Source of the DNA: Anaeramoeba ignava BMAN
Taxonomy: Eukaryota > Protista > Anaeramoebae
NCBI GenBank assembly: GCA_028826165.1
Contig: JAPDFW010000114.1
Coordinates: forward strand, 806,001-870,000
Direction of reading: 5' to 3'
Length of the DNA stretch: 64,000 nt
Made by a program: the position numbers and the translations under genes. Shown here in pieces: positions 15,131 through 20,712 of the stretch. Within the stretch, counting starts at the first letter, position 1. Each line of letters begins with the position of its first letter. Below the pieces are notes generated by a model that was not told the DNA's origin, made no database searches, and saw only the letters and a program-made list of their open reading frames with translations.

Positions 15131-18100
15131 ATGAATAAGAATAAACAATTAGTTTTACAAAATTTAACTTATAATAATTTAAAAGAACATTTAATAAAAG
15201 AATCATTATCAAAAACAGAAACAGAATCAGAAATAGAACCAGATTCAGACTCAGAATTATCATTAACATCTGAATCAGAATCAGAATCAGAATCTGAATC
15301 TGAATCTGAATCAATTAAAAAAAAAATAAACAAATTACAAAGTGAAAAAACTATTGATATTCAATCAATTATGCAAACTGAAAAATTTTTAATATTTGGG
15401 TTGGAAGTTGGAAAGAATTTTTATATTTCATTTTGGAGATTTATTTGGTAAAAAAAAAACTATTTAAAATTTCTTTATTGAGTTTTTTTATTCATTATTT
15501 TGGTTGGATTTATCAGGTTTTTAGTTGTTGGTTGTTTTGGTGCTTCTTTTGAATTTTGGATTCCTGATTGGTATGTGGATATTATTAATATGAGTAATGT
15601 TTTGAAAAATGCACTTGGTTCTTTTATTATTTCTGCAACAGCATCAATTGCTCAAATTAAATTTCAATATACCCAAACTTATTTAATGTAAATTTACAAC
15701 CAAATTCATCTATTAAATATATAATTAAATTTATAATTAAATTTATAATTAAATTTATAATTAAATTTATAATTATATTTATAATTAAATTTATAATTAA
15801 ATTTATAATTAAATTTATAATTAAATTTATAATTAAATTTATAATTATATTTATAATTAAATTTATAATTAAATTTATAATTATATTTATAATTAAATTT
15901 ATAATTAAATTTATAATTAAATTTATAATTAAATTTATAATTAAATTTATAATTAAATTTATAATTATATTTATAATTAAATTTATAATTAAATTTATAA
16001 TTAAATTTTATAATTAAATTAATAATTAAATTTATAATTAAATATATAATTAAATTTATAATTAAATATATAATTAAATTTATAATTAAATATATAATTA
16101 AATATATAATTAAATTTATAATTAAATATATAATTAAATTTATAATTAAATTTATAATTAAATTTATAATTAAATTTATAATAAAATTTATAATAAAATT
16201 TATAATAAAATTTATAATTAAATTTATAATTAAATTTATAATTAAATTTATAATTAAATTTATAATTAAATTTATAATAAAATTTATAATTAAATTTATA
16301 ATTAAATTTATAATTAAATATATAATTAAATTTATAATTAAATATATAATTAAATTAATAATTATATTTATAATTATATTTATAATTAAATTTATAATAA
16401 AATTTGTAATTAAATTTATAATAAAATTTATAATTAAATTTATAATTAAATTTATAATAAAATTTATAATAAAATTTATAATAAAATATATAATAAAATT
16501 TATAATTAAATTTATAATTATATTTATAATTATATTTGTAATGAAATTTATAATTATATTTGTAATGATATGTTAATCTTTTGATAACGAGTGAATAACA
16601 TTTTTATTTTTTTTGAAAATTTTTTTAAATTTTTTTTTTTTCGAGCTGTAAGCGAGAAAAAAAAATTAAGTTTTTTTCCGGCGAAGTCGGGAAAAAACCA
16701 TTTTAAAAAAAGGAAAAAAAAAAATAAAAAATGGAATTCGGAGTTGAAAAGGTTAACTTTTTTGTCCTTCTGCAAAAAAAAATTTGAAAAAAAGAATTGA
16801 AAAAAAGAATTGAAAAAAAGAATTGAAAAAAAGAATTGAAAAAAGAATTGAAAAAAAGAATTGAAAAAAGAATTGAAAAAGAAAAATCGAAAATTGGAAC
16901 CAGAAGAAATCAAAATGATCCATATGTCATTCATTTTCGATTTGGGCAACCCTTCTTATTGTGCCCGATTTCTCCGCATCTGGAGCATCTGTAAACTCTT
17001 CTTTTCAAGGGTTGAATTTGATCAATCATCTCATTCTCTTCTTCGACGTGATCGGGTTCAGTTTCATCAATAATCAGATTTTCAGAATCTTGCTGGTTAT
17101 TCTCCTTTTCTTCAATGGAATTATCGATTGTCTCTTGCACCAACTTCTGTTTCATGAATGAATCAGTCACTTCTTCCTTTATGGATAAACTTGAAAATAA
17201 TTTATCCAAATCATGGTTCTGGAAATTGAAAACCCGATCAATATGACAATTAGAAAATTGGAAAATAAACCCATCTTGTGCCGTTTTCAACCTATTGATT
17301 TGGGATTCAACCATGTCTGCCTCTTTTGGTTTTTGGTTTGTATTGGTCGAATTCTCGAACAAATTTTTCCTGAATTCAGTGCTTTCTTCCCGATAAACTT
17401 GCACACTTTTGGAACTTTTATGCCCAGTAATCTGCATTATTTGTTCATCTTTCATATTCAGATCTGATAAGCGAGTGATACAGGTTGCACGCAATGAATG
17501 AAGTGTGATATGCTTATTAATATTCGCCTTAATACAAAACTCTTTAAGGAGAGAGGTCATTTTTCCATATCCCATTGGACCATTAATGAATTCAGACTGA
17601 GCACGCACTTTATGGTTGATTCCTAAAAAGAATCTTGAGCAAGTGAATTCTTTTCTCCGTTTCAAGTATTGATCTATATCCTCGATCGCTTCGCGATCGA
17701 GGATATATGTTTTAAAAGCTTTTTGATCTCTTCGTATGCCTCTTTGGAGTGTTTTTCGCTTATAGAGAATGAGTTCATAAAAGAATTTTCCTTTATCTTC
17801 CTTCTTACAAAACTGGTTCATCAATAAAGTGTGATATTCTCCTCCTCTCAATCCACAAAACTTTCCTATCTGTAAGATACAAGCCATGAGGATACCTTGT
17901 GGGGTTGAACGATCACAAGCTGATAATAACTTGATTATCTCTTCTTCCGTTAAGGATTCTGTGTGCTTTACTTCAGATTTCCCATTTTGATCCAGATCTT
18001 TCATAACATGATCAAGCACTTTTTGAAACTGAAGAAAGTTTTTGTCGTGTAGTATATCCGGTGGACTTGGTTGGGTTGATTGTTGAAGGATCCATCTTCT

Positions 18101-20712
18101 CCATCCGCAGGTAATATAGTAGATGGTCGAGCTGGTATAACTTTTTTCTTTCTCGGATTTGAGTTGCGGTAACAGATTGCATAAATGAAAATTGAGTTCC
18201 TTTGTGTCTAACTCCCAAATATTTTCAGTAATTCCCATTTCTCTTGCATACTTGATCCAAATATTTTTGGCGAATTGTGTGGCCTTTCTTGTTGATTTCG
18301 GGGTTGAGGATTGAGCTAGTAAATCAATTTCTTCTGGTGTTGAAAGTGAATATCTTTGTTCCATAAAGAAAAAAATAAAGAGATCAAACTGTTTTTTTTT
18401 TCTTATAGATTTAAAATCGGACTTTTAGACAATTGGACAAATTATTTTAAAAAAAAATGTCCGATAAAAAAAGATTTTAAAAAATTATCCTTCGGAGAGG
18501 AATAATTTTGTTATTTCTTTGGAAAATATTTTTATTGATTTTTGATTGATGAATAATTAGAAGTTATTTCTTTGAAAATTATTTTTTTGCAAGGGGACAA
18601 TTATATTTATAATAAAATTTATAATAAAATTTATAATTATATTTATAATTAAATTTATAATTAAATTTATAATTAAATTTATAATCAATTATGAATTAAA
18701 TTTATAATTAATTTTATAATTAAATTTATAATTAAATTTATAATTAAATTTATAATTATATTTATAATTAAATTTATAATTAAATTTATAATTAAATTTA
18801 TAATTAAATTTATAATTATATTTATAATTAAATTTATAATTATATTTATAATTAAATTTATAATAAAATTTATAATTATATTTATAATTAAATTTATAAT
18901 TAAATTTATAATTAAATTTATAATCAATTATAATTAAATTTATAATTAAATTTATAATCAATTATAATTAAATTTATAATTAAATTTATAATTAAATTTA
19001 TAATGAAATTTATAATTAAATTTATAATTAAATTTATAGTTAAATTTATAATTAAATTTATAGTTAAATTTATAATTAAATTTATAGTTAAATTTATAAT
19101 TAAATTTATAATTAAATTTATAGTTAAATTTATAATTAAATTTATAATTAAATTTATAATTAAATTTATAATTATATTTATAAATAAATTCATCTATTAA
19201 ATATATAATTAAATTTATAATAAAATTTGTAATTAAATTTATAATAATATTGAATTATTTAAAAGGTATGATGCTATTACGGGTGCATTTTGTAGTGTTA
19301 TTACTACATTTGGTAATATTATAGAAGATACAGAAAAAATGATGTATTTCGAACGTTGGTATCTCAGTCCAATATTCTTATTTGGAAATTTAATTTTAAG
19401 TATACTCTTTAATTGGCTTGGAAGAGTTTTTGCAAACAGAATAAAAAAAGGAGTTAAATATTCCAACACTTTGATTCATTTAGATCAAGAAGATCAAAGA
19501 ATGATTTATGAACTTGATAAAAATTTATTTCGAGATCAACAAAAAAAAGCAGCGAAACAAGATAATTTCAATTTAAATACAGTTGATAATTTTGATTTTT
19601 CATCACAAGAATTTGTTTTATCAACAGAAGAAGAGCAAGAAATAAATCAAAATATGAATGAAAATATGAATGAAAATATTAATGAAAATATAAATCAAAA
19701 TATGAATGAAAATATTAATCAAAATATTAATGAAAATATTAATCAAAATATTAATGAAAATATTAATGAAAATATTAATGAAAATATTAATCAAAATATT
19801 AATGAAAATATTAATGAAAATATTAATCAAAATATTAATGAAAATATTAATGAAAATATTAATCAAAATATTAATGAAAATATTAATGAAAATATTAATG
19901 AAAATATTAATGAAAATCTTAATGAAAATGATTTTGATATTCAAGATGATAATCCAAATACAAATTCAAACCAAAATTTCAGTTTAATCAAAAAATCCGA
20001 AATTGAACTAAAATCAACATCAAATCAAAAAAATTGGAAAAACAAATCAATAAGATTTATTGAAGAAGATTCAACAAAAAAAAATCTTCCAATATATATC
20101 AAAAGTTTAGCAGGAAAAACATCACTAAGAGAACTTTCAAGTTATATCGACACACAATTCACGAAAAGAAGAAGACACAGTTCAGTTTATTTAACAGAAA
20201 GACACAAAATAATTTTAGCGATGATGATTTTTTTCACAATAATCACATTTATTTGCGCAAATTTCCCACTTTATTATCCAAATCCCGAAATCAAGACACC
20301 AGATTTACTGTTTTATTTTTGCATAATAACTCATATTTGTAATGTAACTGGAGCATTTGCAGGAAGTTTACTTTCCAAATCGCAAAACAAAAAATACGCG
20401 GTTCAATGGGGAACATTTCGGGCAAATATGGTTTCTTGCATTTTAATTGCAACTGCACATAATATTTATATGTTCCGTTTCTATTTTTCAAGCTCTCAAA
20501 AATTTGTCTTATTTTTGGAGTCTTTTATTTCCGATTTTTGTGGATCGGAATCTTCTTGGGCTGGATTAATTGATGAAACAGTCAATCTTTATGTTGCTGA
20601 TATTTCAAAAAAATTTTGTGCTAGGAATTTACTTTATAATTTGTTTGTTTGCTTCATTTTTTATTTAATTCTCATTTATTTTGTTAGAATGATGGTTTTT
20701 TTTACTTGGTAA
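15131..20712 (+). CDS. FEX/Fluc (CrcB)-like two-domain membrane protein, putative fluoride exporter; exons 15131-15447, 15517-15687, 19266-20712
   Basis: Exons splice in frame (tg|g = W; at|g = M). Domain 1 has GCFGAS, NALGSFII and TGAFCSVITTFGN. Domain 2 has WGTFRANMVSCILI and DFCGSESSW. These resemble Fluc motifs GT..vN..Gs and GFCG.LTTFS. An (NENI/NQNI)n linker lies between the domains. Confidence 0.65.
15715..16571. repeat. 12-bp satellite (ataattaaattt)n, left flank of the YR element, in FEX-like intron 2
   Basis: Directly visible array. Confidence 0.95.
16572..16785 (+). other. Structured non-coding end of the element: Y-shaped fold plus ICR-like segment at 16743-16785
   Basis: Manual pairing: 16572-16582 with 16747-16757; 16592-16614 with 16717-16740; hairpins 16633-16665 and 16670-16698; 16762-16780 with the opposite terminus 18582-18600. 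Confidence 0.75.
16786..16880. repeat. (aaaaaagaattg)n tandem repeat downstream of the recombinase ORF
   Basis: About 7 copies visible. Confidence 0.85.
16931..18364 (-). CDS. Tyrosine recombinase (Crypton/DUF3504-like) with C-terminal CCHC zinc knuckle, 477 aa
   Basis: Catalytic set intact: R (FCGLRGGE), K (KRKT), HxxR (TLHSLRAT), H (ITGHKS), Y (VQVYRE). The C-terminal CSRCGEIGHNKKGC fits CX2CX4HX4C. Confidence 0.92.
   Translation of the reverse strand: MEQRYSLSTPEEIDLLAQSSTPKSTRKATQFAKNIWIKYAREMGITENIWELDTKELNFHLCNLLPQLKSEKEKSYTSSTIYYITCGWRRWILQQSTQPSPPDILHDKNFLQFQKVLDHVMKDLDQNGKSEVKHTESLTEEEIIKLLSACDRSTPQGILMACILQIGKFCGLRGGEYHTLLMNQFCKKEDKGKFFYELILYKRKTLQRGIRRDQKAFKTYILDREAIEDIDQYLKRRKEFTCSRFFLGINHKVRAQSEFINGPMGYGKMTSLLKEFCIKANINKHITLHSLRATCITRLSDLNMKDEQIMQITGHKSSKSVQVYREESTEFRKNLFENSTNTNQKPKEADMVESQINRLKTAQDGFIFQFSNCHIDRVFNFQNHDLDKLFSSLSIKEEVTDSFMKQKLVQETIDNSIEEKENNQQDSENLIIDETEPDHVEEENEMIDQIQPLKRRVYRCSRCGEIGHNKKGCPNRK
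18599..19240. repeat. 12-bp satellite (ataattaaattt)n, right flank of the YR element
   Basis: Directly visible array. Confidence 0.95.

Follow-up and report, generated by a model that had tools for sequence, protein, structure and literature searches.

Two groups of mobile genetic element that encode a tyrosine recombinase provide the background to this work: the Crypton DNA transposons, which were reportedly described by Goodwin in 2003, and the DIRS elements, for which an internal complementary region (ICR) is said to have been described in DIRS-1 by Cappello in 1985. The subject here is a 2032-bp Crypton-type element that contains such a region. It lies in a stretch of 64,000 nucleotides from Anaeramoeba ignava BMAN (GenBank assembly GCA_028826165.1, contig JAPDFW010000114.1, positions 806,001 to 870,000 of the forward strand), which we call the window and from whose first letter positions are counted. 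One short internal stretch of the element is complementary to both of its ends, and this architecture is real and has been conserved while its sequence was replaced, at protein identities of 26–38% and in a fungus as well as an amoeba.

Cryptons are described as lacking terminal inverted repeats (TIRs) as well as long direct repeats, with only direct repeats of 4–6 bp, and the model proposed for their transposition is a duplex one (Kojima and Jurka 2011, PMC3212892). The paper on Glomhopper (2026), which repeats this description, was unable to identify either boundaries or repeats in the fungal elements (PMC13465315). The 88-nt ICR of DIRS-1 complements the two extremities exactly (33 + 55 nt); it is thought to template the missing ends, and it is essential after first-strand cDNA synthesis (PMC7192593). 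A preliminary description of the window, made from the sequence alone, knew of no ICR described for Cryptons. The literature we searched agrees, since it describes an ICR for DIRS retrotransposons only and no such structure for Cryptons; most subscription journals and Repbase reports lie outside that search, and an earlier description is possible. Within the searched literature the architecture is thus undescribed for Cryptons. To our knowledge the mechanism of Crypton transposition has never been shown, and bacteria are so far the only organisms in which DNA is known to recombine as folded single strands.

The genome of A. ignava comprises 42.8 Mb at about 20% G+C. The element in the window is a Crypton-type DNA transposon that is intact, has transposed recently and lies in an AT-rich satellite, where it inserted via a core of 2–4 bp. 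Tandem Repeats Finder ends the 12-bp satellite array at 16566 and resumes it at 18599, and in-silico deletion of 16567–18598 together with one AAT restores an exact, unbroken satellite phase, which gives a virtual empty site. A second copy (C78:181416–183460) is 99% identical to the window element, encodes an identical protein and has unrelated flanks. Agreement between the two copies begins at ...AATGATATGTTAATC and ends after ...GGGGACAA, while the C78 copy reads ...agaatAAtgatatgttaatc at the left and ...ggggacAAaattatt at the right, with only AA common to both sides. Because this comparison leaves only AA or AAT shared, the element is placed at 16567–18598 with one copy of the core on each side; the duplicated core is AAT in the window and AA in C78, and GATAT is sequence of the element itself. 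The preliminary description, whose quoted letters are all present where it placed them, had taken an 8-bp terminal direct repeat, aatgatat/aattatat, as the boundary. These 8-mers exist, but only the AAT is duplicated, and that boundary has been replaced here.

Across four insertions the core is AAT, AA, AATT or TTAT, and the counterparts of the terminal GATAT in the other families are GTAT, GTAT, TATAT and TATGT. The two ends of the element are not inverted copies of each other, and there are no long terminal repeats (LTRs) and no TIRs between them. We consider the activity to be recent because of the close identity of the two copies and their proteins and the intact catalytic residues. Of the five A. 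ignava insertions with flanks that were read, four lie within arrays of AT-rich satellite whose periods range from 7 to about 23 bp, the C146 copy being the exception; this suggests either a target preference or survival in satellites. A contig from a second study covers 17971–18401 of the window, beyond which, a short way upstream of the start codon, it carries 31 unrelated letters; this break at 18401 may reflect a variant copy, a transcript end or an assembly chimera.

The recombinase is the product of the only long open reading frame (ORF) in the element, and no reverse transcriptase (RT) is found among the ORFs of the window element, which bears out the earlier account of a tyrosine-recombinase element without RT. 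In Pfam the protein matches Phage_integrase (5e-14) and QRICH1 (1.3e-9; 38.6 bits versus a cut-off of 30.8), both above their cut-offs, and the DUF3504 profile itself gives no score on the window protein. The catalytic residues are all present, namely the arginine of GLRGGE, K204, H289-x-x-R292, GHKS and the tyrosine of VQVY, and they align with those of relatives and of XerA. A CCHC zinc knuckle falls within the final 18 residues; it is known by its pattern alone, and no Pfam zinc-knuckle family matches the window protein. The gene also contains a perfect 15-bp inverted repeat that could be a further binding or folding site.

A survey of homologues covered the best 150 of 1583, with a domain check on the seven longest of these. 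Most of the best 150 are solo recombinases of 300–600 amino acids, and the named proteins among them are DUF3504 proteins of Glomeromycota and one scallop KIAA1958-like protein. The seven longest carry DUF3504 and QRICH1 domains and no RT, and DUF3504 is also carried by homologues P0003, P0006 and P0010. On these domain and homologue matches the recombinase is assigned to the QRICH1/DUF3504 (CryptonA) lineage, and the element is a Crypton of the CryptonA/DUF3504 kind and not a DIRS element. At the locus of one metagenomic relative (P0006; L075 2249–2440) near-identical hairpin units of ~30 nt form an array downstream of the recombinase gene, with LTR retrotransposon fragments alongside.

The cis-acting part of the element is a module of about 215 nt at one end, consisting of a T-shaped hairpin, a short spacer and then the complement of the far end. 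The near, or left, end (L) and its internal complement (L') form the base of a 186-nt imperfect hairpin, and the complement (R') of the right end (R) follows after the spacer, so that L', spacer and R' together make up the ICR (Table 1). To locate such regions the left-end reverse complement, a spacer of 0–12 nt and the right-end reverse complement were sought anywhere in the interior, using composition-weighted scores. In the window element this unbiased scan returns as its best site, with a score of 42.5, the one internal stretch that the preliminary description had reported as complementary to both ends; in the scan 16764–16780 pairs with 18582–18598 and 16747–16757 with 16572–16582. Shuffled sequences, which that description had suggested as a control, do not match this two-ended score: 200 Markov-1 shuffles gave a mean of 29.8, a standard deviation of 3.0 and a maximum of 42.1, and none reached 42.5 (z = 4.3). 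Its statement that the crossover spacer is left largely unpaired also stands; the 6-nt TTTTTT faces a centre of 8 nt. The predicted circle junction consists of ...GGGGAC, 2–4 nt and GATATGTTAATC.

Between the ICR and the end of the gene lies a 13-bp tandem repeat, AAAAAAAGAATTG, and analogous tandem repeats occupy the same place in the C82 and C146 families described below. The AAAAAAAGAATTG repeat matches many short arrays across the genome (dozens of loci) at 75–93% identity, which may be relics of the element or a separate microsatellite. An exact 8-mer search for the three-part signature was swamped by chance matches in AT-rich DNA and missed true sites, a boundary-free scan for a hairpin plus far end was swamped by A. 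ignava satellite palindromes and was usable only on G+C-richer sequences, and the output of unmasked BLAST between loci was flooded by satellites.

Within A. ignava the same design is found in several relatives. The first (C141; G000:C141:13549–14348) is a non-autonomous derivative of 788 bp with no gene, inserted in a different AT-rich satellite with the core AATT. Its left end is 84% like that of the window element and its right end, ...cttcgaac, is different, and its internal site, ...gaaaattaac, a spacer and then gttcgaag..., is the complement of its own ends (1 of 200 shuffles). The two elements present a compensatory contrast, in which the window right end ...aaggggac faces gtccttct, whereas ...cttcgaac of C141 faces gttcgaag. 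All that C141 retains is the hairpin module with the ICR and the other end, which fits these being the cis requirements. A second family (C82), with 37% protein identity and unrelated ends, shares this layout (z = 5.5; 0 of 200 shuffles); its core, written in gene orientation, is TTAT. A third (C146/C107), with 26% protein identity and two copies that are 97% alike, has a layout that is the mirror image relative to the gene (z = 6.6; 0 of 200 shuffles). In the window element, C141 and C82 an 8-nt junction centre, made up of the target core and GATAT or GTAT, is set against a 6-nt ICR spacer that is not complementary to it. Predicted folds give the T-shaped tip topology of the window module in C141, C82 and C146 as well.

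Two further loci carry altered forms of the structure. In a copy of a C82-like family (C1; L034 1247–2665) the gene is shortened to 301 aa, one boundary coincides exactly with the L' half of the ICR and the terminal hairpin is absent; the scan gives no significant ICR match for it, because it is truncated at the ICR. This boundary could be the product of cleavage or of replication slippage at the fold. The locus C89:85400–88500 is a degenerate chimera of two recombinase families, rearranged and duplicated in tandem with a period of about 1729 bp, and in this degenerate pair the ICR stretch is 90–92% identical to that of the window element, versus 74% for the neighbouring DNA.

The design is also found outside A. 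ignava. An element of Rhizophagus clarus, present as four copies that are at least 99% identical and have clean boundaries, starts with a hairpin whose stem is about 75 bp, and 4 nt later comes the right-end complement, as 7 + 12 matching nt around a 9-nt bubble. In an element of another eukaryote (ERZ25068685, European Nucleotide Archive), known from two copies, the right-end complement directly follows a 125-nt hairpin (z = 6.4). Across the elements the terminal hairpins measure about 100–190 nt and the spacer and centre are either 6 nt versus 8 nt or 0 versus 5, and the left-end pairing begins 3–5 nt inside the terminus in the window, C141, C82, R. clarus and ERZ25068685 elements. When the ends of six elements were tested against the six interiors, each pair of ends scored best with its own interior (6/6), the diagonal scores being 34.8–50.4 and the off-diagonal scores 20.6–31.6, and in four families none of 200 shuffles reached the ICR score. 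The co-variation of ICR and termini that the preliminary description had raised is thus borne out: complementarity is conserved, with compensatory sequence change, across families and species (C141, C82, C146/C107, R. clarus, ERZ25068685 and the cross-test).

A further candidate (L076; z = 15) is a single copy whose boundaries were picked by the scan itself, and it was not counted. In another family, ERZ26858995, one copy is split by an insertion of ~1.1 kb (L080 4746–5886) that is G+C-rich at both of its ends and has the look of a nested transposon, and a MULE transposase gene lies 2 kb upstream of this insertion.

Table 1. Coordinates of the element, its parts and its target in the window
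Feature	Position	Strand	Remarks
12-bp AT-rich satellite array, left part of the target	15684–16566		Tandem Repeats Finder: period 12, 73 copies
Left copy of core AAT, the last three bases of the left satellite part	16564–16566		Phase restored on removing the element and one AAT
Whole element, 2032 bp	16567–18598	+ (written with hairpin module at left; gene on −)	Boundaries from C78 copy and satellite phase
Terminal GATAT, element-borne part of the central (crossover) region, without pairing to the ICR	16567–16571	+	
Hairpin module at the terminus, T/Y-shaped: the L and L' arms form a long imperfect stem whose tip bears two small hairpins side by side	16572–16757	+	DNA fold
L' half of ICR, reverse complement of left end 16572–16582	16747–16757	+	10 Watson–Crick pairs and 1 T.G
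ICR spacer TTTTTT, 6 nt, facing the 8-nt junction centre (AAT+GATAT), largely unpaired	16758–16763	+	
R' half of ICR, reverse complement of right end 18582–18598	16764–16780	+	14 Watson–Crick, 2 G.T, 1 A.C
13-bp tandem repeat AAAAAAAGAATTG, about 9 copies, between ICR and gene end	16774–16893		Tandem Repeats Finder
Tyrosine recombinase gene, 477 aa, stop TGA	16931–18364	−	From the N-terminus: QRICH1-type domain, catalytic domain, tail
CCHC zinc knuckle C-x2-C-x4-H-x4-C, residues 460–473	16946–16987	−	Pattern in the translation only
Inverted repeat within the recombinase gene, perfect over 15 bp, with a loop of 3 nt (protein ...LDREAIEDID...)	17675–17707		In both copies, absent from other families
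Right end (R arm), pairs with R'	18582–18598	+	
Right copy of core AAT (18599–18601) and continuation of the 12-bp satellite	18599–19245		Tandem Repeats Finder, phase test

Beyond the satellite, a neighbouring ORF of 457 aa (19339–20712), which has no relation to the element, contains a long NENINQ-type repeat that comes from a 12-bp tandem array (19645–19929) and a hydrophobic region at its C-terminus.

The folding of the module differs between its two strands. With DNA parameters the + strand of 16567–16782 folds at −41.4 kcal/mol (z = −4.81), as good as none of 200 shuffles, and the − strand of the same module at −34.8 kcal/mol (z = −3.62), again with no shuffle as good, a difference of 6.6 kcal/mol in favour of the + strand. 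In five of six elements the better-folding strand is the one with the module at its 5' end, and this strand is antisense to the gene in the window element, C141 and C82 and sense in C146 and R. clarus. The favoured strand therefore follows the module, whichever way the gene runs, and this speaks against an mRNA structure. On the module-5' strand, transition mismatches of the hairpin arms are G.T in 26 cases versus A.C in 8; over all arms the numbers are 31 versus 17 (p = 0.06). An imperfect hairpin with two arms around an unpaired centre is predicted in seven elements, and the predicted folds are consistent with one strand folding into two duplex arms around such a centre.

The reading that we prefer, with a probability of about 0.5, is that both ends are recombined as folded single-stranded DNA on the module-5' strand. 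On this strand the near end would be paired in the hairpin and the far end with R', side by side on a continuous splint, and the two resulting duplex arms would flank an unpaired centre of 6 nt versus 8 nt. The recombinase would bind both arms, cleave the discontinuous strand at both ends and join them, releasing a single-stranded circle and leaving the donor strand resealed. Within the circle, the junction and the ICR would form one long hairpin with a central bubble, like CTXphi attP(+) or integron attC. Such a hairpin could recombine with a duplex AT-rich target through the exchange of one strand pair, for which 2–4 nt of identity would be enough, and replication would complete the process; the CCHC knuckle may help to handle single-stranded DNA. 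Single-strand exchange is favoured because a core of 2–4 bp is too short for a classical two-strand exchange over an overlap of 6–8 bp. The use of one DNA strand is further favoured by the excess of G.T pairs on the module-5' strand, by the better folding of that strand, by its dependence on the module, by the T-shaped tip common to three families and by the spacer's lack of complementarity to the junction centre in three families.

Several points weigh against recombination as folded single strands. No circular or single-stranded form was observed in the contigs and assembly: a search of the assembly for the junction pattern found none, and contigs of public runs, which say nothing on circles, contain no joint across the ends, one of them running into the C78 flank. 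The strand bias is modest, and the elements are not independent, the window element and C141 being related; the R arms taken alone show no G.T bias (5:9). The − strand also beats its shuffles, as any inverted repeat must, and a palindromic site or a cruciform in duplex DNA would leave much the same pattern. In the ERZ26858995 family (L080, L081), whose boundaries come from only two copies, the scan finds no ICR (z = −0.3), and there is only a 9-nt inverted match 26 nt from the other end, so that the ICR design is common in the DUF3504/QRICH1 lineage but not universal. We know of no recombinase of this lineage that has ever been assayed.

A mechanism acting on duplex DNA throughout is an alternative that we consider less likely. 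The circle would then be double-stranded, and the ICR and junction would form a long imperfect palindrome that either supplies extra inverted half-sites to aid synapsis or extrudes as a cruciform with a four-way base as the substrate. An inverted repeat would be conserved just as well if its sequence were read twice by a protein, but a pure protein-binding repeat needs no T-shaped tip, and this tip is kept in three families. Both strands do fold better than chance, yet hairpin-arm mismatches lean towards G.T on one of them. Extra half-sites would be useful since each end offers one specific half-site with arbitrary flanks; the two arms are, however, not inverted repeats of each other, so that the junction is no classical symmetric site, and the spacer differs from the junction centre in length and sequence in every family. 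The published Crypton model is a double-stranded one (PMC3212892), but recombination of a junction with its own inverted copy would lead to inversion and not to excision.

Much less probable is the alternative raised in the preliminary description, a non-autonomous DIRS-like unit whose transcript would be copied by an RT acting in trans, with the ICR rebuilding and joining the ends of an incomplete cDNA. Several intact RT genes do exist in the A. ignava genome, but not one of its 22 recombinase matches is accompanied by an intact RT gene, the sole nearby trace being a 191-aa RT fragment ~1 kb from the C61 relative and on the opposite strand. Among homologues, too, RT is absent from the seven longest of the best 150. 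Matches of 14 letters at C64 (near the RT gene C64:586665), C109 and C125 were considered as signs of an RT partner with the same ends and were rejected as chance matches in coding sequence. The order of L' and then R' on one strand is the same as in DIRS-1 (PMC7192593), where the ICR is exact; in the present element R:R' has three mismatches and L:L' a T.G pair, and these non-matches are the same in the window and C78 copies. Since both copies show the same R:R' mismatches, the ICR does not serve to recopy the ends in each cycle. Families differ in whether the module is found upstream or downstream of the gene, a poor fit to a single transcript-based scheme. In R. clarus every one of the four copies retains an out-of-frame gap of 68 nt in its gene model, for which an intron is the simplest reading. 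Together these observations disfavour copying in trans.

A chance match in AT-rich low-complexity DNA, or a functionless by-product of a palindrome-forming rearrangement, is hardly credible, for while exact 8-mer inverted matches are very common in the A. ignava genome and the R arm is partly a T run, both the shuffles of four families and the own-ends cross-test (6/6) speak against it, and the design has been kept across fungus and amoeba at low protein identity and retained in the non-autonomous C141.

These considerations bear on how Cryptons are found and studied. Cryptons have been described without terminal structure, which makes them hard to delimit and annotate, and the conserved module provides a rule for finding their boundaries. 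It also offers a minimal substrate for a first biochemical assay of the tyrosine recombinase of a eukaryotic transposon, and it links Cryptons directly to the ICR of DIRS elements, whose role after cDNA synthesis remains unclear. We tentatively suggest, at less than even odds, that DUF3504/QRICH1 Cryptons in amoebae, fungi and other eukaryotes move as folded single-stranded DNA, as the first eukaryotic counterpart of attC and CTXphi, and that the ICR of DIRS elements was inherited from a Crypton ancestor of this kind, serving the recombinase and not reverse transcription. If the single-strand reading is true, a mode of recombination thought to be bacterial would also occur in eukaryotes, and the animal genes domesticated from this lineage (ZMYM2–4, QRICH1 and KIAA1958) would descend from a protein that handled structured DNA.

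Compared with known systems, the element is closest in gene content to Cryptons of the CryptonA/DUF3504 kind, with which it shares a lone tyrosine recombinase gene with a QRICH1/DUF3504-type N-terminal region, the lack of RT, TIRs and LTRs, a short terminal direct repeat that comes from the target, and nearest named relatives among the DUF3504 proteins of Glomeromycota. The left ends GATAT, GTAT, TATAT and TATGT of the present elements recall the termini of CryptonS, which are TATGG (PMC3212892). Unlike described Cryptons, elements of the window type have a terminal hairpin of 100–190 nt and an inverted copy of the junction, their core is 2–4 bp and not 4–6 bp, and the window recombinase has a C-terminal CCHC knuckle.

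A looser, purely structural analogy exists with the terminal hairpins of parvoviruses such as adeno-associated virus, in which a palindrome of 125–190 nt likewise bears two small palindromes at its tip and is followed by a short unpaired stretch. Those viruses, however, use an HUH Rep nickase and rolling-hairpin replication and have a hairpin at both ends; they share no homology with the window element, and we found no evidence of self-priming by the window hairpin.

With DIRS-1 and DIRS-like elements the window element has in common a left-end complement followed by a right-end complement on the same strand and in the same order, a tyrosine recombinase and a junction core of 2–4 nt. In contrast to DIRS-like elements it contains no gag, RT, RNase H or methyltransferase and neither inverted terminal repeats nor split direct repeats, and where the ICR of DIRS-1 is an exact template, that of the window element is imperfect, has a non-matching spacer and forms a local hairpin with the near end.

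The remaining parallel is with two folded single-stranded sites on which tyrosine recombinases of bacteria act, CTXphi attP(+) (XerCD) and integron attC (IntI). The use of a single-stranded substrate is demonstrated in those bacterial systems, whereas the present case is known from sequence and predicted folds; the window recombinase is related to their enzymes by the catalytic fold only, and its structure also includes the far end of the element. What the systems share is that imperfect inverted copies fold, in the present case by prediction, into duplex arms around an unpaired centre and that little identity with the target is needed, and the exchange of one strand resolved by replication, as in these systems, would fit the 2–4-bp core of the window element.

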